Positions 1-63,933 of a stretch of 64,000 nt of DNA are shown here, piece after piece; the first letter of the stretch is position 1; the number at the start of each line of letters is the position of its first letter. Location: the NCBI RefSeq assembly GCF_023055435.1, contig NW_025963784.1, positions 806,001 to 870,000 on the forward strand, read 5' to 3'. The notes under the pieces were generated by a model. That model was not told where the DNA came from. It ran no database searches and saw only the letters and a program-made list of their open reading frames with translations. This DNA comes from Haliotis rufescens. Its lineage: Eukaryota. Both the position numbers and the translations under genes were made by a program.

Positions 1-897
1 CATTGCAACTCCACAGTGCTCTGACAAGGACCAGGCTGGTTGCAGTTCTCCCGTTCTTCTCCTTCCACTTTGTAAGCATGTGTACAACTTGCATATATAG
101 TGAACATGGATGTGCAAAAGTCACTTGTTCGATAACCACGAGAGTAAGTCCAAGTTCGATGCCAACAGACTCGAACCCGATCCCGATGTGACTTGCAACA
201 AGGCTGAGATCTCGTCCCGACACAGGAGTATCAAACATCTCTTCATTTACAGCATATGCATGGTTCAGGTGTCTTGGCCCTACAACATTAAACTCACAAT
301 ATGCATACTTTTTACATGTGCGTGTGTTTTGTGTAATATATTGGCTTTCAAATTACCCATTAATATTCTTAATTATCTTAACGTATCTTAATATCAAATC
401 CTCTCAAAAATCCAAGGACAAAACATATTGTTATTATACCACAATATATAATGAAAACATTCTGGGGTACACATAAAAACTGGGAATTATGCTAAGCTTT
501 GACCTGATGAATCATACCAAAACACACAATCCGTCTTTTGAATTCAATGAAACAATAAACATGATTGAATGTACCTCTCTGGACCAGCTGTGGGTTATAC
601 TGGCAGGTTATGGGGTTGTCTGTCTTGGATATTTTCTGGAATCAAAATACAATGAGACATATTCGTGAATACTCGCTGCATCAAAATATTTCCCTCAGTT
701 TAAAAACATGATTGACAGCCGTAAGTAGGGCAATCTTACATATATACATACATAAAAAAACAGGCGCGAATGGACGTGCACACGCGTGGACGCACATAAA
801 CATTGACACGCTGACATACCAAGACGGAAAACACGAGAAATGAGTCTTCACATACCTGATATTTAAATCCTGACCAGCATAAAATAATATTGCCCAT
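1..897 (-). CDS. Death-domain-only protein, copy DD1 (3 exons: 897-856, 635-575, 279-<1; runs off the window)
   Basis: GT-AG splice sites with phases 0 and 1 join in frame: MGNIILCWSGFKYQ|KISKTDNPITCQYNPQLVQR|GPRHLNHAYAVNEEMFDTPVSGRDLSLVASHIGIGFESVGIELGL...HMLTKWKEKNG. The pattern matches a CRADD/PIDD-like death domain. Confidence 0.8.
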
Positions 898-993
898 GCT
901 GCCTGTATCTAACACTCCAGAGAGAATGTGAAACACACAACCGGACCCCCTCAGTATCTGAGAAAATATGAAACTGTCGACTACACAACTGCC

Positions 994-1100: not shown

Positions 1101-3898
1101 TTGTATCTGCCATTAAAAAATGTGGTGTGGGGGTCAGATGTTGGTGTTCGTGCAGCTTTGATGATCAAATAGTATGTTNNNNNNNNNNNNNNNNNNNNNN
1201 NNNNNNNNNNNNNNNNNNNNNNNNNNNNNNNNNNNNNNNNNNNNNNNNNNNNNNNNNNNNNNNNNNNNNNNNNNNNNNNNNNNNNNNNNNNNNNNNNNNN
1301 NNNNNNNNNNNNNNNNNNNNNNNNNNNNNNNNNNNNNNNNNNCAACTTCAAACATTACATGAAGATGTTTCTGCAAAATTCTTTTTTTAAAAAAGCACCA
1401 CATTGTATTATATCCAGGTAATACTTAATGGGACAAATCTTACGAGTTGAATGGGCTTGAAAACACGAAGAGCTACTGAAGAGAAGAGGAAAAATAGTGG
1501 TGGTGTGGATTGGCATACATGAGAAATGAGACAGTCATGTTGTTAACCAAAGTCTCGTCATGTTAGTGTGCACCAATACACTTAAATGTGTTTCCTTTTC
1601 AATAGTACATAATATAATATGAACATATACACATTAGCAGGTCATTTTGCGTTGAGAGCTCAATGGGATATAATAGCATAGCGAAGAACTTCACTTGAAC
1701 TGATTGCGAAGGCGGAACATTCTTCTGTTTAATTGACCTCGATGTGTACGTACAGCAGTTGAATCATCTCACATTTATTCCCGAAACATCAAGTTTTGAT
1801 AAAAGCGACATGCCTAATGATAAAGGAATATCTTCTAATATATCCTCCTGTTCAATTTAATGTACTGGTTACAAAGGAATATCTGCGAAATAATAAAGGA
1901 ATATGTGTTAATATATCCTCCTGTTCAATTTAATGTACTGGTTACAAAGAGGAATATCGAAAAATGGTTACAGTATAAAACAATGTCACATTATCCCAAA
2001 TAGACTCAACATAATATGTTTTAGATATGGTACTAATATAACAGTTGCTGAAGTGCGCATTGGTTATTGCAGAGCGTGTGTCGGATCTTAAATAACTGAC
2101 AATTGAATAACCATTTTGAAATGCATTAATATTTCTTAATGGAGTTGTGACATGTGAATAAATCCAGTTGGAACAGAGAACCTCTGATTGACTGCGTCGG
2201 ATTTTCGGACTAGCAACGTCACAATCGCCGCCGACAAGTAAACGTTATTATCGTCTCTTGTACCGGGACTCTGGCTTTCTTGAATGACTTGGCGATCGAC
2301 TTCGTCTGTCATTACTCTGAAGCGGAGATTTTTTTTATCGAAAATACAACGTGAATAGTATTCTATTTCAACAGGTTTCACAGTTATATAGCAAGCATTT
2401 TACATGAAGTAAAATGTTAAACTCCCGCTTTGGACATTGTTATTGAACCCCAGGGGTAAAAAGCACTCAACATCTACGTTATTGTTCCAGGATCTAATGG
2501 TGGTAACATGTGACATACATTAGTGTAGAAACAGTACAAACTATACAAACATCTCGTTCTAGTGATGTTTCAAAGTGAATGTCATGTGGACCAATATGCC
2601 TTCAGCTTCATGCTGGTAACGACATTTTGCAACAACAAATAGCTTACATCTTTTATTAATTTTGTGAAAGTGGTGGGTGCATCTGGTAGAGCATTACATG
2701 CTAATCATTCTGTGGAATTCCTGGTGTCATCACTGATTTTCAGTGATCCATTCCACTTTTCATCACTATTTTTGATCTTTTCTATGCATAAAAAAGTGAC
2801 AGTGTTTCAGGCTTCTCTATTATTGAGAACATGACTTGTATGTTTGTCATTCAAATTCTTTTTCAAGTTATTTGTAGAATGTAAGAGAGTATATTATTGA
2901 ATACATAAAATCGGATTTTCGAAACAACTAGATTTTTCACCCCTACAACTCTGTTGCAATGGTGCATAGAAATGAGTGCAGTCACTAATAGTCCAAATGT
3001 TTTATGGTAAAAGTGTAGAAGACTGGATAGGATAGCCATTTCCTTGTCTGTGACGGGTTCCACCAGTGGGACAGGATACCTTTTCGCGAACTTCTGGTAT
3101 CATCTCTGTTTGATTTCATACCTGAGAACCACTACAGCCCATGACCGGTATCGCAAACTTCCAACCAGGAAATCTTCTTACAAATAGATTACAGCTACAA
3201 TAGAAAGTAAAACACTGATTGTCGTCCATAATCAATCAGCAAGATTCTACGACCGGCAAACCCTTGTGAAATTGTTCAAAAGAAGAGACAACAGATAAAC
3301 AGTACACTTGGAACAACATAACACAAATAATTTGACTGTTCAATCGTGACCCGACATTGTAGAGTCAAATCATAATGTGAGACGCAATTATGTCTCCGGA
3401 TTTTCGGATAACGGATGACGTTTAGGCCACATGTATTCATCCCTCGCTAGTTCATCCTCAAATAAAAGAGACAGAAAGACAAGTTGTTACAAAAAGCATC
3501 ACAGCAATTTATTAAAAGCATTTATTCTCAACACACACACATAGAATCACAATGTATTACAAACGGAAAAGATATTACTGTTTAAATGAAGAGTGTTCAG
3601 TTTGCATCTTGAGGAAACAGAAAATCAATCAGATCAGTCAGGATTCCAAATTATGTACAAAAGTCTCAGTGAACCTAGCATCGCGACTCGATATTTCAAA
3701 ACGGGAACCCAATCAATCAAAGATAACTGTACATGAGAAGACTGTTCAGTGCAGCGCTAGTATATGAGAGAACATAAATGTAGGCATGATTTCTCTGTAT
3801 GTTGTCGGGGAAACTCAGTGACGATTACTTATATACCCACTCGTGTATTCACAGCGTAAAGCAAGACAGCGTCATGTGCATACAGCTCTCCGACTTGA

Positions 3899-4826
3899 TT
3901 ACACAGACACAGTGGACGGTCCCTGAAGGATGTTGAGAATGTCCTCCCACTCAATGGTACACCTGTCATTGCAACTCCACAGTGCTCTGACAAGGACCAG
4001 GCTGGTTGCAGTTCTCCCGTTCTTCTCCTTCCACTTTGTAAGCATGTGTACAACTTGCATGTATAGTGAACATGGATGTGCAAAAGTCACTTGTTCGATA
4101 ACCACGAGAGTAAGTCCAAGTTCGATGCCAACAGACTCGAACCCGATCCCGATGTGACTTGCAACAAGGCTGAGATCTCGTCCCGACACAGGAGTATCCA
4201 ACATCTCTTCATTTACAGCATATGCATGGTTCACATGTCTTGGCCCTACAACATTAAACTCACAATAAACTACCTATTTACTTGTGTACATTGTGTGTGA
4301 TAGATGTAACAACACTCAGTTCGCTTTCATTATTCTAAATTAGCCTCACTAAACAAAAACAAAAAATACGACCCGTCCATCAATTCATCCACTCATCCAT
4401 ATGGTAATGTGGAAAAAATCATTGTGGTACTCATAGAGCTATACTTCCTGAAATATAAGACAAACAGATCGTTTCAATTCAATGAAACTAAAAAAATTAA
4501 ACAATGTGTTCCAACGTACCTCTCTCTGCCGGGTCGCGTTTATAATGGCAATTTATCGAGTTCCCTGTGGTGGTCAGTCTCTGGAATCGAATAAACACAG
4601 TTTTAAACACGATTGATAGCTACACTATCATAGCAATGGATCATCTTACATAAACTAAACTAAACAAAACAATGCAATAACAAATGCACGTGTACACACG
4701 CCGACGCGCATTATAAACATTGATACCTTAACGTTCGAATCGGGAAAGAACATGAAATAAGCCTGTGGCTGTATATATATCCACCTGATATCGGAATCTT
4801 GACCAGCATGAAACATTATTACCCAT
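3899..4826 (-). CDS. Death-domain-only protein, copy DD2 (exons 4826-4785, 4580-4520, 4245-3899; 149 aa, intact)
   Basis: MGNNVSCWSRFRYQ|RLTTTGNSINCHYKRDPAER|GPRHVNHAY...VASHIGIGFESVGIELGL...MLTKWKEKNGRTATSLVLVRAL. Exon sizes 42/61/347 nt give an open frame. Minus-strand AATAAA signals lie at about 3508-3526. Confidence 0.85.
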
Positions 4827-4912
4827 GCTGTGAGTATCTATGCTTCTACTTCACACACGTGTATCCCACAGCCAGCTGACACAGTCTGATACTGTCGACG
4901 GTTCTGACAATC

Positions 4913-5017
4913 TTTATATTTGGTAGTAGCGTAAGAGGATTCCCCTGCCTTTGGTAGGGAATTGTCAGTCACAGGCAACTTACAAACGGTTTTGGGATCG
5001 CAGTTCGGATTTTAGGA
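4913..5017 (-). promoter_or_regulatory. DD2 promoter: TATA, kB-like GGGGAATCCT (4945-4936), TCCTAAAATCCG (5017-5006); identical in DD6 (~37266-37370)
   Basis: Positionally conserved with the DD1, DD3, DD4 and DD8 promoters. Confidence 0.55.
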
Positions 5018-8000
5018 TTTCATTCGCCATATCAGGATGATAGGCATGGGTAAAATACTTGTGCCGGTAGTATAAACACTTGCGTCAGTCGTGTGTTTAT
5101 AGCCTTTTAGAAGTTGGAAGAATGTGACAAAATGAAACGTGTTTGGATGACAACTTCTTGCCCGTTCATCGTGTGAGGATGCAGGTGAAAGGTGAAGAAG
5201 TAGTCCTCAAATGTCGTAGCAAACAATAGAGAAGTTGTGATCCATAAGAGTTTCACGTGTGTTTGGATCATACTTGCACGCAAGTCATACCGATACTTGT
5301 CTTTTCTGGGCCATCTGTCTTGTTCAGGTGCAGTAAATAATACACTTGTTTAAGTTTATTCAGTTAAATTGTTCATGTTGGCTTTCATCAGATCATCTGT
5401 AGATACGCGTGTTCTCATTTTCCTTATCATCAATACACGGTATGCAGAAACTGATCAAGACAAGAACCATTAAAACCATTTCATCACATTTCTTTTGATG
5501 TTACGATTATAAATGATTCTGTCTTCAGTCTATGTATTTTGGCAAGGATGTTCAAACAAAAACTTTTGCATACGATATATGTGTCTCAAAGCAATATTAC
5601 CAAGGAACATGATACGTATATACATCGGTAAGTGTTGGAAGCTTACGCCGTAATATGATCAATTAGATCAAACCGATCTACCACACTAAAATCATCGATC
5701 CGAAAATCCGACAAAATGTTATACATGTAAATACATGTCGCTAGAGGAGCTGTACATACCGGAATGTGTACATAGGAACAGTTATGTTGCTGTGCGGATA
5801 AGGATATGAGTTCGCGGGTAGTGTCAGTAGGGGGTGTATACGATTTTACGTGCTGAATGGGCTTGAAAATATGAAGAAGAAATAAGGGGAAATATGAGCA
5901 GTGATGTGGTTTGGTATATTGAGGAAATGATATAACATGTTGTCTACATTCACTTGTCTCATCATATAAGTGTGCATCATATAAGTGTGCACAAAACACT
6001 TGAACCTGTGTAGTTGTCAATAGTGCATAAGATAACCAGGCAGTGATCAATACGTAGTGTAAAATTGACTTCCGCCAGAATAGATATAAATGATGTCTCA
6101 CTGTGACATGAGTGCATAACGAAGAACTTCCTTTGAACTAATTGTCTAGTGGAACGTTCTACTGTTTGATTGATGTCGATGTGCATTGGGAAGCAGTTCA
6201 GTCACCTCGCATCTACTCCCGATATATCCCGCGAAGACTGAGGGATAATCTGTAGTTAAAATTCTGTTCATTATTATAAAAGGAATATCTGCTAAAACCT
6301 AATCTTCGTCAGCTGAAGAGGAATATGCAGAATGGTTATAGTATACAACAATGTACGATTATCCCAGATAAACTCAATATTTTATGGTCAATATATCGTA
6401 CCCACGTTACACAGAACAATTGTCAGATATTAAGTAATTGGTGATTGAATAAATTATACATTTGAACTATACATGGGACAGGTTTTTGGACCAATGAAGT
6501 GAAATTTTCCATTTACAAAGAAAATATTTTACCTTCTCGTGTACCCGGACACAAGCTTACTTGAATGGCTTGACGATCGACTACGTCGGGTTCGATTCTC
6601 AACATGACAATAACGTTTATGACAAGTTTGATGCGCTTGTGGTATGTGGACATAATAAATTAAAATGTTAAAAACCTTGGTATCACGACTGCATACAAAA
6701 TAGTGGTTACTTTTATTATTCTGTTTCGTGTGAGAATTATGCATCACCTGTAGTTTGTGGTACTCTGTTAAAGTTAAATTGTGTGTAAATAGTAAAGCGG
6801 GCGGTAAGACGTTTCAGGATTTTCGGATTTTCGGACTGTCGTGAAAAGGCTTATTGAAAAGAAATGCATGTCGTTACGAATATGTTCTGATTTCTGTTTA
6901 CAAACACTTGAATATTTTTTTATCATTGCTATCACTGTGAGGTGGAAGTATTATAAGCCTGCGGCTCGTGGTATTTAACATAGGGCCGGACGCATTAAAC
7001 CACATGAACCCCTCGTGGTACTGCTAAAACGAATTTATCTTACTGACATGTTACACTTGTTAAAGAATTGAAGCAAAATCAAAATTGATAGAAAACAGAT
7101 GTTCGATTGAGCTGAGGATAACTTGTGCTATGTCACGCGACTTTCACTGACTCGGAAAAAGCGTGCGGCTTTTTGCTTCGAAGCGGGGTTGAAGGGATTC
7201 ATTCTCCCGCTCAATGATCACGTGATGCCCGTCTTCTTCGTGGCGGGGTATAAGCGATTATTCTCCCGCTGAGACATTTATGTTCCACCCAGGCAGAATG
7301 CATAGAACTTTATCAAGATCACGTGAACTAATCATATATCAACATTCTGAAATGGAGATATGATGGAACAGAACAGAGAATAATTAGAAATATCTGCCAA
7401 ACGTAAAGCAGATTTTTCGAATCTGACTTATCATAAGTGTGTGTTATTTTATGCAGTGTCAACTTAACTCGGAGGAAAACTGTAGCGCATATCATTCACG
7501 TTTACCACTATGGCAGAACCTCCGATCATGGGTATGTTTCTAACAAACCAACCATCATAATCAGCACAAATCTGGGATTCGAACTCACAATCAAAAGATT
7601 TCGTCACGCTGATTATGTACAGCTATCTGCAACGCATCAGACTACTAAGACACCACCTTGAGTCGTGGAAATGAAATGTTGGATATGTGACAAATCATTT
7701 ATTTTTCGCATTACCGAGCTCAACACTGTAGTATATGTTCCTTCCGATTGAAGTTAACTGAAATATGATAAAACACAAGACTACGATCTTTCATTATTCT
7801 TTGTATATTTCTGAGCGATATTTCACAGATCTAATGGAATCCAAAGCATTCCGAATTTAGTATTTCATATTATTACACAGGCCAGACAGGGAGCGGAAAA
7901 ATCCCCCGATAGGTGTGATAACTATATATATTTGCTATACATGAAGGCAAATCACATAGCCACTTTTACCTCGACACATCTGATCGCTGTACAGGCGGGG

Positions 8001-8060
8001 TGATATCTATATCAAAATATCATGATTCCACCATTTATTGAATGTATATTATTACTGAGA

Positions 8061-9708
8061 TTACAGTGACTGCAGGATGTTGAGAATGTCTTCCCATTCA
8101 ATCGTGCATCTCTCTTTACATGTCCAGAGTGCTTTGACCAGGACCAGATAGGTGGCCGAACTGCCATTCCACTGCTTCCATTTCGTGAGCATAATCAAGA
8201 TCTGCATATACATTGAACATGGGTGTGCAACTCTGCCCTGTTGAATAGCCACAACGCTGAGCCCAAATTCAATCTCGACATACTCAAAGCCGATCCCGAT
8301 ATGTCTCGCAACAAGGCCGAGATCTCGTCTGGTCACTGAAGTCTTGAGTTTTCCGTCATCACAGTGTGCTGAACCTATATGACAAATACAAGAGACACAA
8401 AATGTTATTTAACGGCTGTAATTAGATGTAAGAATAAAATATTAGTTCCGGAGGGCTGTTATTCCGACAAAACAGTTTAAGAGAAAAAATAACTGAAATG
8501 ATAACATGTGCATGGGAACCTAAAACATATTACAGTAAAACAGTTAAAGAGAAATACAGGAAACCACAGTGGACAATCATGTATCAGCTTTACATACAGA
8601 GCATTTCTATATGGAGCCTGACCAATTCCAAAGAAGCCTGCCGAAATCTATATATGATTCAACGTTTCGCAAATCATTTGAAAGGCAATTCCAGACCCGG
8701 TGGCCTCACAAACAAACGCATTCAGCCAGAACATTGATGTTGTTACCAGGGGATTCTCAGCTGAGGGAGTTTGAAGGAGTTGGTTTGACTTCTGATTTCA
8801 TGAACACTTTTATATTTTATTGATATAACATATGTTTTGAATTAACCTAACTCACTTACCGAACTATATTATTAAACAGCTAAAAAAAACCAACCAGAAT
8901 ATTTCAGAACAAAATGCATTCATAAATCTTCAAAACAGATATTATGAGAAATGAGTAAAACAAACCTTTCTTTACGATCTGCTGAATACAAAGACAGGTC
9001 AGTTCGTTGTTTGTCAGCCTCTAGAATAGAAAGTACACACTAACAGTACACTAACAGTGTTAAGCTCACATGCTGGATCATTTCTGGACACGCATTGCAT
9101 TTTGCTTCATAGTCAAAGAGTGAGTGAGTGAGTTTGGTTTAAAGTCGCTTTTAACAGTATTCCAGTTATATCACAACGTGTCAGCTTAATGTGGGAGGAA
9201 AGCCCGAAGTGATGCAAGTTTAAGATGTTTACCTCTTCGGTGAAACCCAGGAGCGCGGTTATGGTGCTGACAAACCTAGAAACATAATAGGGGCCAACCC
9301 CGGATTCGGCGTGCCAAATGGACGCACCTCTGCACAGGCGCCTTAGACGACTGGGCCACCCGTGCCCCCTCATAGTCAAAGAAAACATTAATATTTCACC
9401 ATGCTCGACTTGATATTTTCATTCGTACGGAATGATAAACAATCTGCAGAGTCATGTTGACATTAAAATGATAACTGTGTAAACACCTCACTGGGCTGCT
9501 GACTATCACTGACATAGTCAATGGAAATATCAAAGAGTGTGGTCAATCCCGGTAAAATAACATCGAGTATGATGAATTTAGAATGCTATACTCTGAGGGT
9601 CGAGTGCTGTTCAAGTTTTACAAATTGCACATTTGTCATATAAACTAGAAAGTCGTTAAGGCGTACCTGATATTGAATTCCTGGGGAGCACGACAGAATG
9701 TTCCGCAT
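8061..9708 (-). CDS. Death-domain-only protein, copy DD3, divergent (exons 9708-9667, 9020-8966, 8374-8061; Gly2 replaced by Arg)
   Basis: MRNILSCSPGIQYQ|RLTNNELTCLCIQQIVKK|GSAHCDDGKLKTSVTRRDLGLVARHIGIGFEYVEIEFGL...MLTKWKQWNG. Canonical splice sites; the frame stays open. Confidence 0.7.
9120..9369 (-). mobile_element. tRNA-derived SINE (second family) with 13-bp TSD
   Basis: TSD TCATAGTCAAAGA at 9107-9119 and 9370-9382, and a (TCAC)n tail. Homologous to 28124-28400. Confidence 0.85.
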
Positions 9709-9797
9709 GCTATCTGTATCTCAATCTTTATGACACTTATGTTTCGCCTGAAATGATCTGACTGAATCGAGAACTGGCAGCTACACGTGAGCAAATT

Positions 9798-9878
9798 GGG
9801 GAATCCCCACCACAATATGAAACTACTACTTCTCTATCGTTCATGTTCGCTTCCAGCAAGGATCTTCGGATTTTCGGA
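9798..9878 (-). promoter_or_regulatory. DD3 promoter: kB site GGGGAATCCCC (9798-9808) and CGGATTTTCGGA (9867-9878)
   Basis: Both motifs are conserved although the flanking sequence is strongly diverged from the other copies. Confidence 0.6.
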
Positions 9879-11933
9879 TTTTTAAAATCGATAGAAAGAT
9901 ATGGCGATTGTCTCGATGCAGTGTAATAATATGAATGGATCACTGAAAAACAATGATGACACCAGGTTTTTGTGAAAATGTTGAGCATGTCCTGCTCTAC
10001 TTGGGCGGCCCGCCACTCCCACAAATTTACTAAAGTAAGTGTGCAATGTTCCTGCCACGACGCTGGCCTCAACATAATCGTTTCTAGACCAGTGATCATA
10101 ATCATGAGTAAGCGTGACCATCCCATCGATTCAAATGAGTGCCATTAAGTTAGGAGGAGTGAAACGTCCCTGTAATGTCATGGCATGTCAGAGAATCGCG
10201 CATGATGTTGACAAGCAGCGTATTATGTTTGATAAAATCCTCCGAATGCCTACCATAAAATGTTTGAAATGACTTGAACAGGCCTTTGATGGTTCAACCT
10301 TACTTGAAATACTTAGTCATATGAAAGTTATGAAATGTAAGAGGTTATATTGTTGAATATTGTACACATAAAATCGAATTGTTGGACCCACTAGTTTTAT
10401 CACCAATACAAATCTGTTTCTGTAGCGTAGAGATGAGAGAACAGTCACCACTGTATCAACACATGCATGCTTCGTCTTGGCGCCAATCTCTTCCGTCATC
10501 CTTCTCAGTCTACATGCAAACGTGTTTTAAGTTTAACGGTAGGTGAAGAGGACATTTCCAAATTTGTGGCATCAGTGGCGATGACGTGCGATGCAGTTCC
10601 CGATTTGGACCATATGAGCCCGTGTTTGTTCCCAGTGCATAACACTGGCTTTTCGCTTTGATGTGTTTAGACGGTGCAACCAGTGGGACAGGACACGCTC
10701 ATCTTTACGCTGACACTTAGTATCATAACTATGTGATGGTTATAAAAAAAATACATGATAATGTTATCGCTTTTCTTTTTATTTGTTAGATTTGCGAAGA
10801 AGAAAATAGGCATGACAATTTGTTCAATAATGACCGTTCGACTGAAATAATAAGATATAATATAAATTGTATGTACGAGGCAATGTTTTGTAACATAAGT
10901 ACCTGCTTCTGTGATATAAGATTTGTGCATTATAACGACTGTTGAAAACATGGCAACAGTTGTCATTTGTTATCAATCTAAACAAGCACCAGCAAACATA
11001 TGCATAATCAATAATTGTTCATAAATCTAAAACAATATCTATTGTATATTAAGCCATAAGACCAATAAAACATTTTGCATATTGTTATTTACCAGGCTAT
11101 ATTTCGGCGTTGTTTAGACATTACTATGGGGCACTGGTTCATATACATAGGTAGCATGTTTTAAGGAAAATGTTTATGTCCATATATATCTCAGCCCATG
11201 CTGCATTAATGATGCGCATCTCTCTATAGATGTGATCACACCCCAGTTGCTGCACAAGGTGACCTGTCATAACCTGTCATCATTCCTGAAAACTACTACA
11301 GCCCATGACCTTACAAATAGAATAGAGCTAATATATAAAGTCAGAAAATAATGGCGTCCTTAATGAATCAAAAACGATTCTACAACCGGCAAACCTTATA
11401 ATAGTGTTCAAAATCAGAATAAACAGATAGACAGTACCCTTGAAATTACATTCTAAAAATATTTAGAATTTTCAATCCTTAATATAGTCGGGACATTTGT
11501 TATGTGAGAGGCAATTATGTTTCCGGATTTTCGGACTACGGATGACGTTTAGGGCACAGCTTGTCATCCCTCGGTCACTGTTCCGCGAATATCACAAGAG
11601 GCAGAATGACCAGTTCTTACAAAGGACATCAATGCAGTTTATTAACATACAAATACAATCACAATGTATTATATACGGAAATTAAATGATAACTGTACAT
11701 ATGATGAGTGTTTAGTGCGCAACTTGCACGAGGAAAAACATCATCCGGTTCAGTCATGGTGAATCTAGTATCGCGACTCGATATTTCAAAGGGATTGTTT
11801 CGCACAATCTAAATGTGCAGGTGCATGGCTACGCAGAAATAAATGTTAGTACCTGAAGGATGTTGAGAATATCCTCCCAATGAATAAATCAGTGATAACT
11901 GTACTTGAGAAGGTTGTTCAGAGCAGCACTTTA

Positions 11934-13235: not shown

Positions 13236-13350
13236 GCTGCCTGTATCTATGACGTCTAGTGAGAAAATGAAACACACATGTGTATCCTTCAGTCGCCGCG
13301 ACTATATGACTCCTTAACAAAATTACATTAAACACATATAAATAGGGAAA

Positions 13351-52946: not shown

Positions 52947-55900
52947 ATGGCGCCTAATCCGAAACCACCCGAGCCTTACCTGACAGGGAGAACCTCAGCC
53001 CTTAAAGTGGAGGAGATTGTTAACATTCTGAGGAGTCCAGATGAGAGCAATACCATCCAGACTGCCCCCGTCACACCCCAGGGAGGGGAGGTGTACCTCT
53101 ATAAGATAACCTCGGGAATGAGAGAAGGTGAGGCAGTTGTGTTCAGGCTCAATATACCGCGGGTAAGGGATTAATACATATGAACAATGTTAATATTTCA
53201 TGGAAAGCTGTTATTATTTATTAAACAATTTGAATTCAAAGGGTTTGTTATGCACACATGACCAATGTCCTCAAAAGCCACATTCATATACATGTACGTT
53301 ATTAGTAATAGTCTGCTTGACGTCGGGGTCACCCTGCCCTGGTATCAGCTTCCTTGTACAGCCCTGTGATAACAGATTTTATGTTCGTTAATATTGTTGA
53401 CAAGTGATTGTCATGCAATAAGTGACTACGTGAATTAAGTTTATTTGTCTATATCATTGTTTAAAACGACTTCTTTTGCAAAATGTTCTATCTTTGTTTT
53501 TCTTTTCACTCTTTCCATCCCCTTTACAACAATTGTGTACTTAAATAATGAACATTGTTTGATGTCAACTTATAGAAAATCCATTGTTGGATTAATCAAT
53601 ATGGGCTAAACAAGAATCAAGTATCGTGTTGCATCTCAGGGAAGGAGAAAAGGACATGGTATTTATCATCACAACCTCTAATACAACATATTTATGCATG
53701 ACCTTACAGCTGATTTGGCATTAAGGTGGGTTGATTTTAGAGTTATGTTGCACTATTGACTGTTCACAGTTTTATTAATTAACATCTACATCACAGGTGA
53801 CACACTAACACACAAAGAATTTTGGGGGATAGTTCATCTTCAGGATTACAACATTGTTTGCAATGTTATGATATTAATTTCTATTTGCAGATATCTGGAA
53901 GGATGACAAATATCACTTCAGAAGTGATGGAACTCGGAAGCAGCCTGGCTCAAGTCCAGTCATAGTGAAGCAGTACCACAAGGCTAACACCGAGGACAAG
54001 ACAACAACAAGGGCCTTTGTCAGAGAAGCATCGTATCTGTACAACCAGCCTCTGAAACACGTTCTAATGCAATATATCGGGGACCACACACAAGCACAGC
54101 CTGCTCCCCAACGCAAGAAGCGTGGCCAACAGACAGTTAATACCTCAGGTGACAGTAAATGTAGGAAAGTAGAATCAACTGGTGGAGCTGTGCAGTCAGG
54201 TGTCACGGAGAACACTAACTCCAACCTGGACCCTGAAGATCATTCATCACCGACAGAATTGGAAGACAATGGTAAATCAAACAGTATTCTAGGTGTAACA
54301 TTGAATGGAGCAAAGGTGTCAGAGACTGAAACAAAGAATGATCACGACACAAATCAGAAACGCTGCAGGACAGGAGATCATAGAAGTGATGATGACATTG
54401 AATATTTGGGTACAACGTCAGGCTCCCCTGTCAAGAAACCTCGTTTGCACCCTCAAGTTGAAAATGACAACACAGTTTTAACCTTTGTCAATAACACACA
54501 CTATTCTTATCTGTACACTTTTCTAGAAGAAGTAGAAAGAAATCGTGATGTGATAAAGGTCGTGCAACAAGTCCTAGCATTATCTAGGTGCTGGAACAAG
54601 GACTGTACCAACAAAGGCAATCCGTGCTTCTCACTCATTGAAGAGGTTGACAAAAACTGGAATCTAGATTCAATAAAAGCAAGGAACTTGGTTAAATGTG
54701 CTGTTAATACTGACGGTCTGAGCTGGAACCAAGACCGGTCAGTTTACATAAACCTCATCGCAGCAGTACTTGTTGGAGCATGCCATACCAGGACTGAAGT
54801 ACAGGACTTTGTGAAAACACTGAAGGATCCTCCTTCACACCTGCAGCATGTACAAGAGGACGTCCCCCTGTCACGTGAATGTACATACACAGTTGGCTGC
54901 TACACCATCAGAGGAGATGTTCTGTCTCGCCTGGAAACCAACGAGTGGCTGACAGATGAAGTAAGTTGTCCACCTGCAATATTTGCACAATCACACAAAC
55001 TACGTGCCTAGTTAACCATCCAAGAAAATCATTTCATAGAGCATGAGAGGCTTTCGATTTCATCAAATGATGTCAGTATTAGATATTAACTGGGGGCGTG
55101 AGGGTGGTGAGTGGTTCAGTCACCTAATACTCATTGATAGTGCCTTGAGGTAGGGGAGCTTGAGCTTGAGTTTGGTTAAACGCCTCTTTTTGACAGTAGT
55201 GTCATGGTGAGTTTGATTAAATTCTGAAGAAAGTGATGCACATCTTTGACGTTAACCACTTTGTTGATTCCCATGGTGAATCTGCATAGCGAAATGCGGC
55301 GCCTTGGACCACTGAGACCCCATCTTAAGATTAATACAGTAACTTTTGGCGGTTTCTTCTTTTTACACCAGTATTAGTTAACTATCAATTCATATAATGG
55401 TGCTTATTATCAACTCATTGCCATGCATCTCGATTCTGCAATGATAACACTACTCACCTGCAATGGGCATTGTACACAAAATCTAGTACATCACCAGTCA
55501 AATTGTCAGTCATTGCTAACAGCCGATATATTCTCTTCATGATAAATATGTGATGTGCAGCGGATCCTGCTTTGATTTGAAATTACAAGCGTTCCTTTTG
55601 AAGCAAACGCATTGGGCGATTAAACAGTATAATAAACATTCTAATAAATGAACTCTTTCCTGTCCAGATCATGGACACATACCTGCACCTCCTGGAGGGA
55701 GAGTGGTGTTCCCGTGTCAGCTTCCACTGTCTGGTGCTGCCTACAGAGACAATCCTACTGTGGGAGGCAGGACAGTACACAGACAGAATAAGGGGGAAAG
55801 ATGTGAGTGACGTGAGATTTTTATATTTCTTATAATTCTTTCATTCCGAGTGTACTATTGCATGTCCACCATACCATGAACAAGGGCAAGACTCGAAATA

Positions 55901-58900
55901 TATTTTGCAGTAGTTGTATATTTTTTGTGATAACATATGATTCGTCTATGCCATGATTGCGTATTCAGTATGCTAGAAGTTGTCACTTGCAATTGTGCGC
56001 ACGAAGCGACCATATGCTGCAATGGGTTTCAATTGAGTCAAAGCCAGTAACCCCATTGATCATAATGCTATTCGTTTTCAATATGCAGTTACAAAAGCAG
56101 ATATTGCACATGAACATATTCGTCTTGCTACATATTATTTTACGAAGTGAAAATCTGGTTGTCAGAGAGAGGTCTTTAGAAGTTCTAAGTTCCAAGTTCA
56201 TGATACCAATTCACTAATATCTCTGTTACTGCATCATATCCATCTTATGTGAAGCACGTGTTTCTTGATATATTGATCATACACCGGAAAGGCATTTGTT
56301 GTGAACTTTCAGGAAAATTTGACAAACTACACGTGGATCTTAATGCCAGTGAACATGCCACGTAATCAACATTGGGTGCTACTGGTGGCTAATGTCAAGG
56401 ATGGAACAGTGGGCGTGGTTAATTCTAAACCCTCCTTAGATGTGGAGGACAAAGTTGTAGAACACTGGAGGTAGGTGGACAGAACAGTGGGCGTGGTCAA
56501 TTCTAAACCCGCCTTAGATGTAGAAGACCCATTCGTACAACACTAGAGGTAGATACAAAAAACAAAGAGGACGTGTGGCTGCACATTATAAATGTTAAAA
56601 CCAAGCTATCCAATTTGAAATGTTGAAATGTTGATTTGTCAAAAACAAACATGAATGTAAATAAGACCCATCGAAAAATTCTCGATACACTCACATTTGT
56701 AGCTTTTACTTTTGGGTAGAAGATATAGAACAACTTGTTCACAGGGTTACTCAGTTCCCCAGATGGGTACACTGTGTGAATGATTATAACGCCATAAATA
56801 CAGTTATGTCACTGATTCATTTCAACCATAACATCTGTATTTGCTAACATTAAACCTAATGGTGGACAAAGCAGGAGAGAATATCAGAAATGCAAGGACC
56901 GGATATTTTAGACACTGCTGTATTTACCTTCTGCTCTACTTTTACTTTAACACCAGTCCACATGAGTTGAAGATGTTATTGCCATCGAGTAATATACATG
57001 TATTCCTCAGGCTCTTTGTAAACCACTTGAAATCTACGTCTAAGGAATGGAGCAAGTCATGGATGAAGAAACAGTACCCAGTGATAGAACAGTCTGATGG
57101 ACACAGCTGTGGGATATTCGTTCTGATGGTAGGTTGGTTTGAAGCTATGTTTTTGATATGAAAGGCAACATGTGTCTCAAAAACCACGTATGAAAGATAC
57201 CTTTTCATTTCTAACCTTCATATTCTCAGGCTGCTGATGCAATTTTGTCGGAGACGTCTCCAAGCATCATGAGGAACTGTCACGTAGAGAAATACAGGCT
57301 GTATGTGCTTCAGAGGATACTACAGTATGCCAAGGCCAAGGGAGATATGCAGGGTGGAGGAAATCACATGATGGCAGTTGATGGACAGAGTAATGTCACA
57401 AACGAAATTCAAACTGTAACGCTGGAGACAAGAGATGTACTGGAAAATATCTGTACAATATCAACAGAGCAAGGAGGTCCAACTATTCATGAAGAGGATG
57501 GACATGAAACACATGAAGGAACCGACTCTGCTGTCGCCAGTGATGAAAGTATGCATTCTGGAGATCATTACTATGTTACGGAATTGTAAGTCGTTACGCA
57601 AGGTATTATATTTTAAATCTACATGTGCAATGTTGTACACTGCTTTCTAACAAACGCTATTTGTTTTCACAGATACAGAGGACTATCCATGTTTGGATCA
57701 GCACTTGTTGCATAAGCAGGAGATGGCGTGCATGTTAGTGGTTGCTTTGGCGGAGAATAACCTGGAGGAGAGGATGCTATGGGCAGGGTCTGACACAGGG
57801 ACTCGCGTGGAAAGAGAAACCTACAAAAAATATATTGTTTGGGCACTTAAGGCTTTTGACATCAATGAAAAAGAATACACTGAAAATGTGATGAAACCTA
57901 TTTTATCCCAATTAACGGGATGCTGTCTCCATCATGAAGCAGGCTCATATAGAATAAGAAATCATAAAGTAGCAATAAAGCTAAGAGAAATACTGCTACG
58001 TGATGTTAGGCAGTTGGTTGAAAGGATGGATCTCGAGTTCATATTTCGTTATGTGACATTTAGAGATGATCCAACTGAAGAGGAACAACTAAATGTGTCT
58101 TTCAACCTCGAATTGAAACATGATGATCTGCATATTGTAGCGAAGCGGTTTGCTACAGCTTTACACGGCAGAAAGTTTGCCTTTGTGTGCATGCATTCCC
58201 TATTCCAGGTAGAGACATTTGTTGATATGGTTTGGGAGAAATTGTTGCATAATATGAACAAGGACAGTTCTGTACTGTTGAAAGTATTGTCAAATAATGA
58301 CATTGTACATGGATATTCCTTTCTGTTTTGGGCGAGCATCACAGACAACTCACATTTGTTGAGGAGAGCATTGTTCAGTGTTCAATTGAATGCAGAGAAC
58401 AGAAAGGAAGCTTTGTTTGGAAGTTGCTTTGGGAATAGTTTGGCCAACTTCGATTACTTGTTTTCCAATAAAAACTGGAAGTTGGATAAGTTGTGGATGA
58501 CACTACCCAAACTCCCAAGACCTCTTATCATTAAACTGCAGTTGGCAGTTGCAGATGATCTGGGAGAAAAGTTTGGTAAATGTTCACTTTTGGACATTGC
58601 CTGTATGGGTGGGTTGTCTGCAGTGGCTTCCAGATTGTCACATTTGATAAAGATGAGCAAGAAGAAAAACAGGTCAAGAAAGAATACATATGTACATTTT
58701 GCATCCTTGTGCCTAAAGGGCAAAGATACCATGGATACAAGTACAAAAATTGGAAAACTGAATGTCAATATAAAAGGCCCTGAAGGATCAACACCTTTAC
58801 ATTACGCATGTGCAGTTGGAAATGTTAGCATTGTAAGCTATCTGTTACAGGAAGTAGTGGACATTGGTGAGCAAAACAAGAAGGGTGAAACTGGGCTTCA

Positions 58901-61900
58901 TTTGGCATGTATATATGGAAACGCAGAAGTTGTTACAATGTTATTAAAGAACAAGGGAATAATTCATGTGAAAGATAATGCTGGCCGCACACCTCTACAT
59001 GATGCATCCAGGCAGGGACATAGGGAGGTTGTGGAGGTGTTATTACAGAACAAGACAAATGTGGATGAGAAAGATAAGGAAGGCCGCACACCTCTACATG
59101 ATGCATCCTGGCAGGGACATAAGGTGAGGTGAGGTGAAATGGGGTTTAACGTCGCGTCCAAGATTATTGCACTTATATAGCGACGTCAGGGACATAAGGA
59201 GGTTGTGGAGCAGTTATTACTGAACAAGGCAAATGTGAATGAGAAACGTCGAGATGGCAGCACACCTCTACATGATGCAGCCTTGCAGGGACATAGAGAG
59301 GTTGTGGAGGTGTTATTACAGAACAAGGCAAATGTGGATGAGAAACATCAAGAAGGCAGCACACCTCTACATGATGCATCCTGGCAGGGACATAGGGAGG
59401 TTGTGGAGGTGTTATTACAGAACAAGGCAAATATGGATGAGAAAGATCAAGAAGGCAGCACACCTCTACATCTTGCAGCCTACCAGGGACATAGGGAGGT
59501 TGTGGAGGTGTTATTACAGAACAAGGCAAATGTGCATGAGAAACGTAATGATGGCTGCACACCTCTACATAATGCAGCCTACCAGGGACATCGGGAGATT
59601 GTGGAGGTGTTATTACAGAACAAGGCAAATGTGGATGAGAAACATCAAGAAGGCAGCACATCTCTACATCTTGCAGCCTACCAGGGACATAGGGAGGTTG
59701 TGGAGGTGTTATTACAGAACAAGGCAAATGTGAATGAGAAACGTAATGATGGCCGCTCACCTCTACATCATGTGGCCTACCACGGACACAGGGAGGTTGT
59801 GGAGGTGTTATTACAGAACAAGACAAATGCATATGAGAAAGATAAGGAAGGCCGCACACCTCTACATGATGCAGCCTGGCAGGGACACAGGGAGGCTGTG
59901 GATGTGTTATTACAGAACAAGGCAAATGTGGATGACAAACGTGATGATGGCCGCACACCTCTACATCTTGCAGCCTCCCACGGACATAGGGATGTTGTGG
60001 AGTTGTTACTACAGAACAAGGCAAATGTGGATGAGAAACGTCAAGATGGCAGCACATCTCTACATGATGCAGGCTACCGGGGACATAGGGAGGTTGTGGA
60101 GTTGTTATTACAGAACAAGGCAAATGTGAATGAAAAACGTAATGGTGGCCGCACACCTCTACATCATGCAGCCAACCAGGGACACAGGGAGGTTGTGGAG
60201 GTGTTATTACAGAACAAGACAAATGTAGATAAGAAAGATAAGGAAGGCCGCACACCTCTACATGATGCAGCCTGGCAGGGACACAGGGAGGTTGTGGATG
60301 TGTTATTACGGAACAAGGCAAATGTGGATGACAAACGTGATGATGGCCGCACATCTCTACATGATGCAGCCTACCGGGGACATAGGGAGGTTGTGGAGGT
60401 GTTATTACAGAACAAGGCAAATGTGAATGAGAAACGTAATGATGGCACCACACCTCTACATCGTGCAGCCTACCAGGGACATAGGGAGGTTGTGGAGTTG
60501 TTATTACAGAACAAGGCAAATGTGGATGAGAAACATCAAGAAGGCAGCACACCTCTACATCTTGCAGCCTCCCACGGACATAGGGAGGTTGTGGAGTTGT
60601 TATTACAGAACAAGGCAAATGTGGATGAGAAAGATAAGGAAGGCCGCACACCTCTACATCGTGCAGCCTGGCAAGGACATCGGGTGGTTGTGGATGTGTT
60701 ATTACGGAACAAGGCAAATGTGGATGACAAACGTGATGATGGCCGCACACCTTTACATGATGCAGCCAGGCAGGGACACAGGGAGGTTGTGGAGGTGTTA
60801 TTACAGAACAAGGCAAATGTGGATGGGAAAGATAAGGAAGGCCGCACACCTCTACATCTTGCAGCCTCCCACGGACATAGGGAGGTTGTGGAGTTGTTAT
60901 TACAGAACAAGGCAAATGTGGATGAGAAAGATAAGGAAGGCCGCACCCCTGTACATCGTGCAGCCTGGCAAGGACATCGGGTGGTTGTGGATGTGTTATT
61001 ACGGAACAAGGCAAATGTGGATGACAAACGTGATGATGGCCGCACACCTTTACATGATGCAGCCAGGCAGGGACACAGGGAGGTTGTGGAGGTGTTATTA
61101 CAGAACAAGGCAAATGTGGATGGGAAAGATAAGGAAGGCCACACACCTCTACATCTTGCAGCCTCCCACGGACATAGGGAGGTTGTGGAGTTGTTATTAC
61201 AGAACAAGGCAAATGTGGATGAGAAAGATAAGGAAGGCCGCACACCTCTACATCGTGCAGCCTGGCAAGGACATCGGGTGGTTGTGGAGGTGTTTTTACA
61301 GAACAAGGCAAATGTGGATGAGAAACGTGAAGGTGGCAGCACACCTCTACATCTTGCAGCCTACCAGGGACATTGGATCGTTGTGGAGTTGTTATTACAG
61401 AACAAGGCAAATGTGGATGAGAAAGATAAGGAAGGCCGCACACCTCTACATCGTGCAGCCTGGCAAGGACATCGGGTGGTTGTGGATGTGTTATTACGGA
61501 ACAAGGCAAATGTGGATGACAAACGTGATGATGGCCGCACACCTTTACATGATGCAGCCAGGCAGGGACACAGGGAGGTTGTGGAGGTGTTATTACAGAA
61601 CAAGGCAAATGTGGATGGGAAAGATAAGGAAGGCCGCACACCTCTACATCTTGCAGCCTCCCACGGACATAGGGAGGTTGTGGAGTTGTTATTACAGAAC
61701 AAGGCAAATGTGGATGAGAAAGATAAGGAAGGCCGCACCCCTGTACATCGTGCAGCCTGGCAAGGACATCGGGTGGTTGTGGATGTGTTATTACGGAACA
61801 AGGCAAATGTGGATGACAAACGTGATGATGGCCGCACACCTTTACATGATGCAGCCAGGCAGGGACACAGGGAGGTTGTGGAGGTGTTATTACAGAACAA

Positions 61901-63933
61901 GGCAAATGTGGATGGGAAAGATAAGGAAGGCCACACACCTCTACATCTTGCAGCCTCCCACGGACATAGGGAGGTTGTGGAGTTGTTATTACAGAACAAG
62001 GCAAATGTGGATGAGAAAGATAAGGAAGGCCGCACACCTCTACATCGTGCAGCCTGGCAAGGACATCGGGTGGTTGTGGAGGTGTTTTTACAGAACAAGG
62101 CAAATGTGGATGAGAAACGTGAAGGTGGCAGCACACCTCTACATCTTGCAGCCTACCAGGGACATTGGATCGTTGTGGAGTTGTTATTACAGAACAAGGC
62201 AAATGTGGATGAGAAAGATAAGGAAGGCCGCACACCTCTACATCGTGCAGCCTCCCACGCACATAGGGAGGTTGTGGAGTTGTTATTACAGAACAAGGCA
62301 AATGTGGATGAGAAAGATAAGGAAGGCCGCACACCTCTACATCGTGCAGCCTGGCAAGGACATCGGGTGGTTGTGGAGGTGTTATTACAGAACAAGGCAA
62401 ATGTGGATGAGAAACGTCAAGATGGCAGCACACCTCTACATCTTGCAGCCTACCAGGGACATCGGGTGGTTGTGGAGGTGTTATTACAGAACAAGGCCAA
62501 TTTGGATGAGAAACGTCAAGATGGCAGCACACCTCTACATGATGCAGCCTGGCAGGGACATAGGAAGGTTGTGGAGTTGTTATTACAGAACAAGGCAAAT
62601 GTTTATGAGAAAGACGATAAAGAAGAAACTGCTTTACAAAAAGCAGAGGCGCAACATCACGATGATATCGCAAGGATTATAACTGAGGCAACAACTTTAC
62701 ATGACCTGACAACCAACCATGGTACAATTATAGATAAGTAAGAGCAATGTGGAAATCATGCTTGAGTTGACAGCCCAAACACATATATTGTATACGCTGT
62801 TTTGCAGAACAGTTTTGAAATCTCACGAAACCATATGAGACCTCGAAGAGGACAGTACCATCAGACATTTATCAAAATATCTATCATTTATCTAAGAATA
62901 TAGACAGAGCATTTCTACAAGGCCCCCCAAACAACATACTAAAAGTCCCAAATCAATCAATCAAATATGTCATGAGAGACCAACAGTGTATTGATATTGA
63001 ATGTCTCTCCATGTCTTGGAGGTCATCTTGGAATTTTGGGCCAGTCAGTTAGTGTGACAAGTTTTATGCAAATACGTCCCAGCACACTGTTTCAGAGATA
63101 AAAGCTTCAACAGTCTAAACTTATGTAAATTAGACATATTTCCCAAACTGGGATTGCTTGGGACTTTAAGTATGTTGTTTTGGGGACCTTGTAGACATGC
63201 ATTGTGGTGAGATGAACTCTATTGCTATTTGTTCCAAGTGAAACCTTATTTTCCATGGGCTACATATGTCAATGGGGACTTTGCAAAAACGCTAAAATTA
63301 TGTTAACCAATATTTGAACTTAATTAGGCTTCACTGTGTATACTATTGAATGATTTCGCTGGAACCTTTTACATCTTGATTTTGTATTATATATCACAAT
63401 AGCATCATTATTTTGATTAAGTCCTATTTTCTCTGAATTACTGTGTCAAGTGCATGTGATATTGTTTCAGGGTGACAACCGATGGCCAGTTTCTTATGAA
63501 ATCATCGTCAATTCCACACGGAAGCTATAACAATGGCGGTTGGCTTACATCCACACCACTAACATCAACGTGCCCAGTGAACCAGACATCAGTAGAACTG
63601 CCAGGGGTGTATGTTCCGGGCCAACTAGGACAGGCAGTTTCCACAGACAGACAAAGTGTTATGGAAGAGAGATACATCGCCTTGAAGTCATCCCAACCAT
63701 ATCATATAGACGGAAATCTTAACAACCTCCTTACAGATCCTGCACGCTTGGAGATACGTTCACCCAATCAAAGATCAGAAACCATATATGGAATCTCAAG
63801 TCATGTTCCCACCTATGTCCATGCTCCAGTAGTTGGTGACACATTGCCTAGTTCAGATGCCACTAGTAATTCTGAGAATGTCATCATTCACTACACTGAG
63901 TCTGGGGAAATGATAGAGCTGCAGCAGCTCTAA
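52947..63933 (+). CDS. CG-1-like / Ulp1(C48) protease / ankyrin-repeat protein, copy B (exons 52947-53127, 53891-54960, 55668-55802, 56313-56470, 57011-57128, 57230-57548, 57673-62737, 63471-63933; about 2477 aa if 59124-59198 is spliced out)
   Basis: All introns are GT-AG with compatible phases; the exon 6 donor is the least certain. Motifs: EEIVNIL..P.TPQGGEVYLY..WKDDKYHF..FVREASYL..LMQYIGD (CG-1-like); WLTDE, QHWVLLV, VVNS, EQSDGHSCG (C48 peptidase); TPLHxAAxxGH repeats. The only stop lies inside the insertion, at 59130-59132. Confidence 0.75.
58982..62620 (+). repeat. Tandem 99-bp ankyrin array, about 36 units, with 297-bp and 792-bp higher-order duplications
   Basis: Same consensus as the copy A array. 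An 8-repeat block ending GHWIVVE recurs at a 792-bp offset (for example 61342 and 62134). Confidence 0.9.
59125..59186 (-). mobile_element. 62-bp SINE 3'-end insertion in the ankyrin exon, with 13-bp TSD
   Basis: CAGGGACATAAGG is duplicated at 59112-59124 and 59187-59199. The insert matches ~16003-16063. Confidence 0.9.

Follow-up and report, generated by a model that had tools for sequence, protein, structure and literature searches.

A death-domain gene family and a CG-1-like/Ulp1/ankyrin gene family linked across repeated duplications in abalone

Introduction

Why do small death-domain genes recur, copy after copy, beside a large gene of entirely different domain content? The question is posed by a 64,000-nucleotide stretch of red abalone (Haliotis rufescens) DNA, here called the window (C6:806001–870000, where C6 is contig NW_025963784.1 of the 1.33 Gb, 615-contig assembly GCF_023055435.1; other C numbers likewise denote contigs). 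Self-BLAST resolves the window into two tandem units, unit 1 (~1–26600) being collinear with unit 2 (~32500–64000) at 91–97% identity. Each holds four minus-strand, three-exon genes for a death domain (DD), some of them decayed, and one plus-strand large gene; in unit 2 a 4.5 kb retroelement has been added and the ankyrin array is longer (Table 1).

A first-pass annotation of this DNA had described just such a duplicated unit, with about four minus-strand DD genes and one divergent plus-strand multidomain gene, and self-BLAST, tblastn and a family-specific hidden Markov model (HMM) all bear it out. Of the parts that it listed, the DD, Ulp1 peptidase, ankyrin array, kB-like promoter motif and N-terminal acylation motif were all detected as sequence. 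Its term "head-to-head" is right for orientation but not for a compact bidirectional promoter, the start codons lying 4.2 kb (unit 1) and 8.5 kb (unit 2) apart.

The answer that we favour, and hold on balance to be probable, is that the two families form a co-inherited pair acting in one pathway, of immune or cell-death signalling, at the core of a Haliotis-specific tandem array. New here is the finding that the same two families are adjacent at three old paralogous loci, with matching divergence ranks.

The two families are linked at anciently diverged loci

Distant paralogues that match the large gene in domain order lie at C594:5.32 Mb (LOC124124203, 3808 aa), C24:35.96 Mb, C27:0.14–0.16 Mb and C594:21.88 Mb, and a few more are known from matches to its second exon (E2) only. 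Scanning the whole genome with the Pfam Death profile and the family-specific HMM placed DD-family exons 10–20 kb from three of these paralogues, which are only 20–23% identical to the array copy in the helical region of the large protein. By a rough estimate, assuming ~30 non-array DD loci in 1.33 Gb, chance would give ~0.007 such co-occurrences over eight paralogue loci. The first-pass annotation had asked whether the families come apart at other loci; in this genome they are linked at three anciently diverged ones.

The two families also diverge in step. DD identities are 62–65% between C27 and C594:5.3 Mb, 38–50% between C594:5.3 Mb and C594:21.8 Mb, and 29–36% between the array and the rest, and the helical region gives 54%, 39% and 20–23% in the same order of loci. 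This agreement of ranks across four loci indicates that the pair was duplicated and retained as a block.

The window is one slice of a large array

In red abalone the two units are part of a tandem array that extends over at least 340 kb. At least 150 DD exon matches were scored, all but three on the minus strand of C6 (300–1,020,898), C72 and C594:41.58–41.93 Mb. The exon for the helical region gives 27 matches in the arrays of these contigs, all on the plus strand, and E2 gives ~35, also on the plus strand, including those of a divergent "type B" large gene. Type B copies are 29–33% identical in E2, are interspersed in the same arrays and keep the order CG-1-like, Ulp1, ankyrin. C594 alone holds at least 30 DD exons and nine large genes in 340 kb.

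An example of type B lies at C6:657001–668000, with eight further E2-type matches elsewhere; these copies have the best CG-1 scores in the array, and their helical region is too divergent to detect.

Abalones have been reported to carry "non-syntenic homologous chromosomes", one of them enriched in duplicated ankyrin genes (PMC12627906). That work reports domain enrichment only, with no mention of death domains, of a CG-1-like/Ulp1 architecture or of a conserved gene pair. Our array fits that published picture of a haplotype-variable, ankyrin-rich abalone chromosome.

The small proteins carry a CRADD-type death domain

DD exons were located by tblastn and the family HMM, with separate mapping of exons 1 and 2 for the remaining copies; full-length inferences rest on database proteins and exon-by-exon references. 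Reading the minus strand upstream of 3899–4245 gave a gene model of three exons with compatible phases. Exon 1 encodes 14 residues, beginning Met-Gly-Asn and with Ser or Cys at positions 6–7 (MGNxxSC), exon 2 is a linker (61 nt in DD gene 2 of unit 1) and exon 3 is the DD. The open reading frame (ORF) at 43317–43676 is 99% identical to the H. rufescens RefSeq protein LOC124127415.

Three window ORFs narrowly pass the Pfam Death profile (PF00531), scoring 23.1–25.8 bits against a curated cut-off of 22.6, and array and paralogue DD exons exceed the same cut-off in the genome-wide scan. A profile built from twelve family members matched solved death domains of CRADD (E = 7e-12), ankyrin-3 (1e-9) and PIDD (2e-7). 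An AlphaFold2 model of the domain (pLDDT 78.5) returned death domains as all of its top 25 Foldseek matches in the PDB, superimposing on the RAIDD DD with a TMt of 0.83 and a root-mean-square deviation (rmsd) of 2.1. By profile and predicted fold, the domain is assigned to the CRADD/ankyrin/PIDD type. The ratio of nonsynonymous to synonymous substitution (dN/dS) is 0.13–0.18 between the older DD classes, at dS 0.4–1.6, which indicates long-term purifying selection.

Annotated family members are 117–149 aa long, the one exception being a 201-aa model that is extended upstream, and PF00531 is the only domain recorded for them. CARD and other effector domains are absent, and the acylation motif and linker fill the 35 residues ahead of the DD; lacking an N-terminal CARD, the family fails as a CRADD/RAIDD orthologue. 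The consensus for N-myristoylation and S-palmitoylation calls for a Met-Gly start, a small sixth residue and a Cys close by. Five intact exon 1 copies in the window have a motif of this kind, as do four Haliotis species; two decayed copies have lost it. RefSeq models from H. cracherodii and H. rubra have the same three-exon structure; in the H. asinina model the motif is internal. The DD proteins are probably membrane-anchored, with lipidation as the predicted means.

Searches for exons 1 and 2 and the promoters of distant-locus DD genes, using an nhmmer promoter profile and tblastn, returned nothing; RefSeq proteins then showed that these members start differently. The proteins of the old paralogues have no Met-Gly but a basic stretch and a Cys cluster just before a common W-S/P-G-Y-Q motif, and the Cys clusters may be a different route to the same predicted membrane anchoring. 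Two loci have DD genes only. C605:45762528–45772793 has two in opposite orientation that keep the kB-like site and MGN start, and C445:17669656–17730590 has a cluster of five or six distant family members (36% identical).

Birth-and-death turnover of the DD genes, as the first-pass annotation had it, is plain within the window, where truncated, frameshifted, Gly2-less and orphan copies all occur. The orphan promoter and exon 1 at 30029–30174 have no DD exon detectable downstream within the window. Across the array, two DD subfamilies repeat the same single in-frame stop (TAG in ~20 copies, TGA in ~25), perhaps as pseudogene lineages carried along when the unit was amplified, or perhaps because the matches run into an intron.

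DD genes share a Rel-type promoter element and are matched by putative transcripts

The pattern GGGRNWYYCC occurs 20 times in the window against 3.6 expected, mostly at five palindromic sites that are each matched several times. In window DD genes that keep exon 1, a kB-like site lies 104–126 nt upstream of the ATG, with a TATA-like box ~25 nt after it and then a conserved stretch into the start codon; the candidate Rel-type site reads GGGGAATCCCC. The shared promoter layout noted at first pass thus comprises a kB-like palindrome, a TATA-like box and an exon 1 that starts MGN.

Genome-wide, a kB-like site with a start codon at 95–125 nt was matched 69 times, against once for the reversed control. 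About 62 of the 69 are in the arrays and three at the DD-only locus on C605, and they span at least five promoter classes in which the intervening sequence differs and the motif is kept. The exon 1 pattern has 65 copies in the genome, all at these loci. On C6 a strict kB match accompanies 24 of 37 exon 1 copies; one-letter variants or slightly shorter spacing occur at several more. Judged by motif and position, a conserved Rel/NF-kB-type promoter element stands upstream of the DD genes. The term "kB-driven" holds to the extent of this conserved motif at a fixed position, and predicts control by NF-kB.

For 3800–9799 we compared one independent DNA run, which covered all 30 bins, with three runs that are RNA by guess and come from two organisms; repeats aside, the guessed-RNA runs covered only 3800–4245, the last exon and 3' untranslated region of DD gene 2, and, weakly, 7810–8170. 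One 389-nt contig from the guessed-RNA runs stops exactly at the predicted acceptor at 4245, leaving 54 further letters unplaced; it is 96% identical to the window, and so possibly derived from a paralogue. With the runs being RNA by guess, this supports transcription and splicing of genes like DD gene 2.

The large protein combines a CG-1-like domain, a Ulp1 peptidase and ankyrin repeats

The order in the large gene is CG-1-like domain, Ulp1/C48 peptidase, helical region, ankyrin repeats. Its exons were mapped by tblastn with the H. cracherodii protein XP_071097650 (2079 aa; 92% identical over the region queried). The copy in unit 2 is near-intact and open apart from a 75-nt stop-carrying insert (59130–59204) in ankyrin repeat 5; its CG-1-like domain is made up of E1 and the start of E2. 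The unit 1 copy is probably a pseudogene, given an in-frame 87-nt (CCN)n expansion in E1 (17566–17652), which places a proline run inside the CG-1-like domain, and frameshifts of +1 at 19395 (E2) and −7 near 23144.

The (CCN)n expansion is absent from unit 2 and from a compared paralogue. The 75-nt insert is flanked on both sides by a 9-nt duplication, GGACATAAG; its first 66 nt start with GTGAGG and end with CAG, and if they were spliced out as a mini-intron, the frame would be preserved with a gain of three residues.

Peptidase_C48 (PF02902) matches the window exon at 20880–21059 with 25.7 bits against a cut-off of 20.7, XP_071097650 at 8e-11 and the distant paralogue LOC124124203 at 4e-17 (Pfam). 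All six paralogue lineages examined keep the peptidase His, oxyanion Gln and Cys, and five of them have Asn at the canonical Asp position. The domain is a probably active ubiquitin-like protease.

The N-terminal domain is harder to place. CG-1 (PF03859) scores 19.7 bits in XP_071097650 and 16.9 bits in LOC124124203 against a cut-off of 23.5, both alignments spanning profile positions 7–114 of 116. In a six-frame genome scan a third array subfamily reaches 19–22 bits, and the true CG-1 gene on C212 reaches 64. The nearest language-model (Atlas) clusters for residues 1–130 are all CG-1 (scores 0.84–0.89), which we take as a lead only. We call the domain CG-1-like, probably homologous to CG-1 and not a demonstrated family member; the earlier assignment keeps its repeatable full-length matches in two paralogues 20–23% identical in the helical region, but these stay below the cut-off. 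No TIG/IPT or IQ motif appeared in a Pfam scan of full-length XP_071097650 at E up to 1. Searching Atlas for the joint CG-1 and Ulp1 architecture in other taxa gave generic Ulp1 clusters only.

The helical region has four matches among 1.84 billion representatives, of which three were looked up, all from Haliotis. Its model (pLDDT 62.6) suggests degenerate ankyrin-like similarity in the second half only (residues 142–268, Z 6–8, VIA-align) and a weak winged-helix-like match in the first 90 residues (VIA-align). Foldseek found no significant match to it, and neither a death fold nor an NTPase fold was seen; hence no structural reason for DD binding emerged. A predicted complex of the helical region plus the first four ankyrin repeats with the LOC124127415 DD protein scored 0.00, which is evidence neither way. 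The idea that the region is a STAND (NACHT/NB-ARC) NTPase was rejected, with no NTPase family in Pfam scans and no Foldseek match.

The ankyrin array (Pfam Ank and Ank_2 matches down to E = 1e-231) has a period of 99 nt. The first-pass claim that the units differ in ankyrin copy number and surface residues stands: there are ~18 repeats in unit 1 and ~39 in unit 2, and among the in-register repeats (12 + 34) entropy peaks at positions 1, 3, 8, 11 and 33, the canonical concave surface. Across the large-gene family the count runs from 18 to ~80, and the array probably varies between haplotypes. Inside the unit 2 array, eight repeats (792 bp) are duplicated exactly and in tandem, 60591–61382 being equal to 61383–62174; either the expansion happened very recently or the assembly produced it.

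Taxonomic range and relation to known systems

Searched with a single protein and with a profile against 5.8 billion proteins, the DD family was found only in H. rufescens, H. cracherodii, H. rubra and H. asinina, although the search was word-limited and distant relatives outside Haliotis may escape it. The large protein was likewise found only in Haliotis, and both families are annotated in the three other species. A literature search found no paper on the pair or on the CG-1-like/Ulp1/ankyrin architecture. The first-pass label "undescribed" therefore suits these, but not ankyrin-gene amplification in abalone, which is already published (PMC12627906).

Among known systems, the DD proteins come closest to CRADD/RAIDD of the PIDDosome, in best profile match (CRADD) and in fold (TM 0.83 to RAIDD), and NCBI names the black-abalone members "CRADD-like". 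They differ in having no CARD, a length of 130–150 aa, an N-terminal acylation motif and dozens of copies. CRADD has been described as the only CARD-domain activator in molluscs, acting through CARD-caspase activation (PMC11463336); with a single mollusc CRADD, a CARD-less CRADD-type family is a plausible modulator. Ankyrin-R/B/G, ANKDD1 and DAPK1 similarly associate a long ankyrin array with an ankyrin-type DD, but in abalone the two are on separate polypeptides encoded on opposite strands, and there is no ZU5-UPA. Ankyrin-G, too, is reported to be membrane-anchored by palmitoylation (PMC4820748).

The large protein recalls three families. CAMTA proteins have the layout CG-1, TIG, ankyrin, IQ, and the abalone protein shares a CG-1-like N-terminal domain with ankyrin repeats downstream; it differs in a sub-cut-off CG-1, in having no TIG or IQ found, in an inserted Ulp1 domain and helical region, and in 18–80 repeats against few. 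The true CG-1 gene of the red abalone lies elsewhere, on C212, where CAMTA-type CG-1 exons occur seven times over C212:299555–806118 at ~70–150 kb spacing and with near-identical scores, reflecting either tandem duplication or assembly redundancy. To Ulp1/SENP C48 enzymes the likeness is an above-cut-off Pfam match with His, Gln and Cys conserved; the differences are an Asn in place of Asp in five of six lineages and fusion to CG-1-like and ankyrin modules. With NF-kB p105/p100 and Relish the likeness goes no further than the working principle, in which one signalling unit, activated by proteolysis, unites a DNA-binding head with an ankyrin block and a DD, the abalone head being CG-1-like rather than a Rel homology domain, with the DD on separate genes and the protease built in.

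As to genomic organization, marine-invertebrate immune-type expansions, including the ankyrin duplication on abalone Chr9, share tandem birth-and-death in a haplotype-variable region (PMC12627906). Paired plant NLRs (for example RRS1/RPS4) are again alike in working principle only, being adjacent, often divergently transcribed, and duplicating and diverging as matched pairs; no NB-ARC or NACHT appears in the abalone Pfam scans, and domains and kingdom are unrelated.

Discussion

How might the parts work together? The window samples an array built by repeated duplication of a multi-gene unit. Its small proteins, we propose, would be membrane-tethered, inducible DD adaptors or decoys of the CRADD/PIDD branch, which would nucleate or cap CRADD/PIDD-type DD oligomers. 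Its large proteins would be variable ankyrin binding modules coupled to an isopeptidase or processing protease for ubiquitin-like proteins, with a possibly DNA-binding head, and both would serve in one innate-immune or cell-death pathway, probably as matched partners. The adaptor/decoy and variable-binder roles are suggested by known properties of the parts: death domains oligomerise with other death domains, and CARD-less DD proteins can be adaptors or decoys; Ulp1/SENP enzymes cleave ubiquitin-like modifiers; concave ankyrin surfaces bind proteins; and Rel sites confer inducibility.

Several observations weigh against a common pathway. The two families share a strand at C594:5.33 Mb and are in mixed orientation at C594:21.8 Mb, so that orientation is not conserved, their spacing varies between loci, and start codons 4–8 kb apart leave them without a common promoter. 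No DD exon lies within 20 kb upstream of the C24 paralogue, and no large gene was detected at the DD-only loci on C605 and C445. Linkage at paralogous loci can, moreover, be inherited passively from one ancestral adjacency, and a single ancestral pair could give all the pairs; the families might be passive neighbours without functional link, copied by segmental duplication in a duplication-prone, haplotype-variable region of a kind known from abalone chromosomes with massive duplicate accumulation (PMC12627906). We think this somewhat unlikely, because the two families match in their divergence ranks and in their narrow taxonomic range, purifying selection acts on the DD, and at three loci as well as in the array the adjacency has outlasted protein divergence to 20–36% identity. 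Individual parts of the shared-pathway reading also meet difficulties. Decay is widespread in the array, whose many pseudogenes take in the large gene of unit 1 and, among the eight window DD genes, three; recent large-gene duplicates have a dN/dS of 0.4–0.7. The canonical catalytic Asp of the peptidase, at the position taken from SENP1 spacing, is Asn in all lineages but the C24 paralogue. CG-1 is below the Pfam cut-off in every copy (16.9–22.3 bits), and the transcript runs are RNA by guess only.

Copy numbers, too, are inflated by assembly redundancy between C6, C72 and C594: C6:212–240 kb gives matches identical to those of window unit 1, C6:1–92 kb runs parallel to C594, the offset being 41,662,507 throughout (one ankyrin ORF differing by one repeat of 33 aa, 2712 against 2745), and C72 mirrors C6:940–1025 kb. 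Possibly C6 and C72 represent other haplotypes of the array on C594. Taken further, with the four sequence gaps at homologous places as an added sign, the same redundancy might make the units themselves an artefact, two haplotypes or the same reads placed twice and stitched in tandem. That is scarcely credible, since the units differ by 3–9%, by the 4.5 kb retroelement, by a 1 kb indel and in pseudogene states, the C594 array is long and rich in both families by itself, and three other Haliotis species have both families annotated. In the DNA run, contigs common to both units have a k-mer depth of 70–130 against 12–16 for a unit 1-specific piece, a contrast that is suggestive only in pointing to multi-copy status.

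Extreme tandem amplification with rapid pseudogenisation, a one-genus range, a haplotype-variable setting and adjacent partners that diverge in step would also suit intragenomic conflict, a selfish toxin-antidote or drive-like pair in which a Ulp1-protease protein is matched by a cognate neutralising partner. Wolbachia CidA/CidB, a Ulp1-type enzyme with an adjacent cognate partner, offers a precedent by analogy. We consider this highly unlikely, as the conserved NF-kB-like motif and CRADD-type DD point to somatic signalling and no toxin-like domain was identified. A transposon origin of the unit was rejected: it has no transposase, the units are all tandem in one orientation, and the lone retroelement is a secondary insertion in unit 2.

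The shared-pathway reading can be sharpened into an abalone-specific matched-pair immune system, in which a hypervariable ankyrin-Ulp1 sensor/effector has its own cognate membrane-tethered DD partner and the pairs are diversified by block duplication. We put this forward as a doubtful proposal; if true, matched pairs would provide the animal with a large repertoire that varies between individuals, comparable in principle to paired plant NLRs but made from entirely different domains. To our knowledge, molluscs are without adaptive immunity and rely on expanded innate families, of which only a few have been defined in architecture or in the logic of their partnerships. Here the locus supplies a concrete module, with a conserved pair, a candidate inducible element, a predicted anchor, a probable protease and a copy-variable ankyrin array. 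Abalones are farmed and endangered animals that suffer from infectious disease. The region that holds the array is haplotype-variable and ankyrin-rich, of the type that the literature already links to resilience. If the pair acts in defence, its variation in copy number and repeats would be a natural candidate for differences in disease resistance.

Feature coordinates and further observations

Table 1. Positions of the features discussed (window coordinates unless a contig is named).
Feature	Position	Strand	Details
DD gene 1, unit 1	2–1021	−	DD exon 2–286 (cut by window start); exon 2 ~573–638; exon 1 856–897 (MGNIILC...); kB-like palindrome 1011–1021
DD gene 2, unit 1, intact	3899–4945	−	DD exon 3899–4245; exon 2 4520–4580; exon 1 4785–4826 (MGNNVSC...); TATA-like box near 4918; kB-like GGGGAATCCT at 4936–4945
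DD gene 3, unit 1	8070–9808	−	DD exon 8070–8360; exon 1 near 9690; kB palindrome 9798–9808; divergent paralogue, 63–66% identical; start MRN, Gly2 lost
DD gene 4, unit 1	11934–13361	−	DD exon 11934–12293; exon 2 12682–12747; exon 1 13194–13235 (MGNICSY...); kB palindrome 13351–13361
Large gene, unit 1	17443–26531	+	E1 17443–17709; E2 18471–19545; last exon 26058–26531
Large gene, unit 1, Ulp1 exons	20250–20392, 20898–21056, 21588–21713, 21809–22105	+	
Large gene, unit 1, helical region and ~18 ankyrin repeats	22227–25134	+	
Orphan promoter and exon 1	30029–30174	−	Exon 1 30029–30070 (MGNIRSC...); kB-like GGGAGTCCCC at 30165–30174
DD gene 1, unit 2, pseudogene	32499–33290	−	DD exon truncated, 32499–32669; exon 2 32950–33015; exon 1 start MSN (Gly2 lost); kB site degenerate
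DD gene 2, unit 2, intact	36249–37298	−	DD exon 36249–36595; exon 2 36871–36936; exon 1 37138–37179; kB-like site near 37289–37298
DD gene 3, unit 2, pseudogene	40402–40655	−	DD exon frameshifted; exon 1 and promoter deleted, junction 41271–41274
DD gene 4, unit 2 (RefSeq LOC124127415)	43317–44565	−	DD exon 43317–43676; exon 2 44079–44144; exon 1 44406–44447 (MGNIVAY...); kB palindrome 44555–44565
Retroelement	44705–49212	+	Between DD gene 4 and large gene, unit 2 only
Retroelement ORFs	45416–46600, 46404–48035	+	Gag-like (zinc-finger match) and reverse-transcriptase (RVT_1), respectively; Pfam
Large gene, unit 2	52947–63933	+	E1 52947–53126; E2 53890–54963; last exon 63472–63933
Large gene, unit 2, Ulp1 exons	55665–55810, 56313–56471, 57009–57134, 57230–57550	+	His in 56313–56471; Gln and Cys in 57009–57134
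Large gene, unit 2, helical region and ~39 ankyrin repeats	57672–62741	+	
N gaps	12312–12454, 43694–43908		In intron 2 of the fourth DD gene, units 1 and 2
N gaps	1179–1342, 33549–33700		Start ~160 nt upstream of the first DD gene's kB site, units 1 and 2
DD exons near old paralogue	C594:5,336,608–5,338,502		Two exons (LOC124124211)
DD exon near old paralogue	C27:178,344–178,682		One exon
DD exons near old paralogue	C594:21,840,467–21,862,058		Five exons

The N gaps fall at two homologous places per unit, with flanks homologous between the units, and none of the four is in a coding exon. The retroelement is GC-rich, and self-BLAST found no long terminal repeats in it. Very high-copy repeats, with word depths up to 860,000 in the DNA run, lie at 7000–7199, 7400–7599 and 9000–9400. 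The last of these falls in a stretch specific to unit 1 (8984–9959). Loose ends of the repeats, with a tRNA-like motif, suggest a tRNA-derived short interspersed element.

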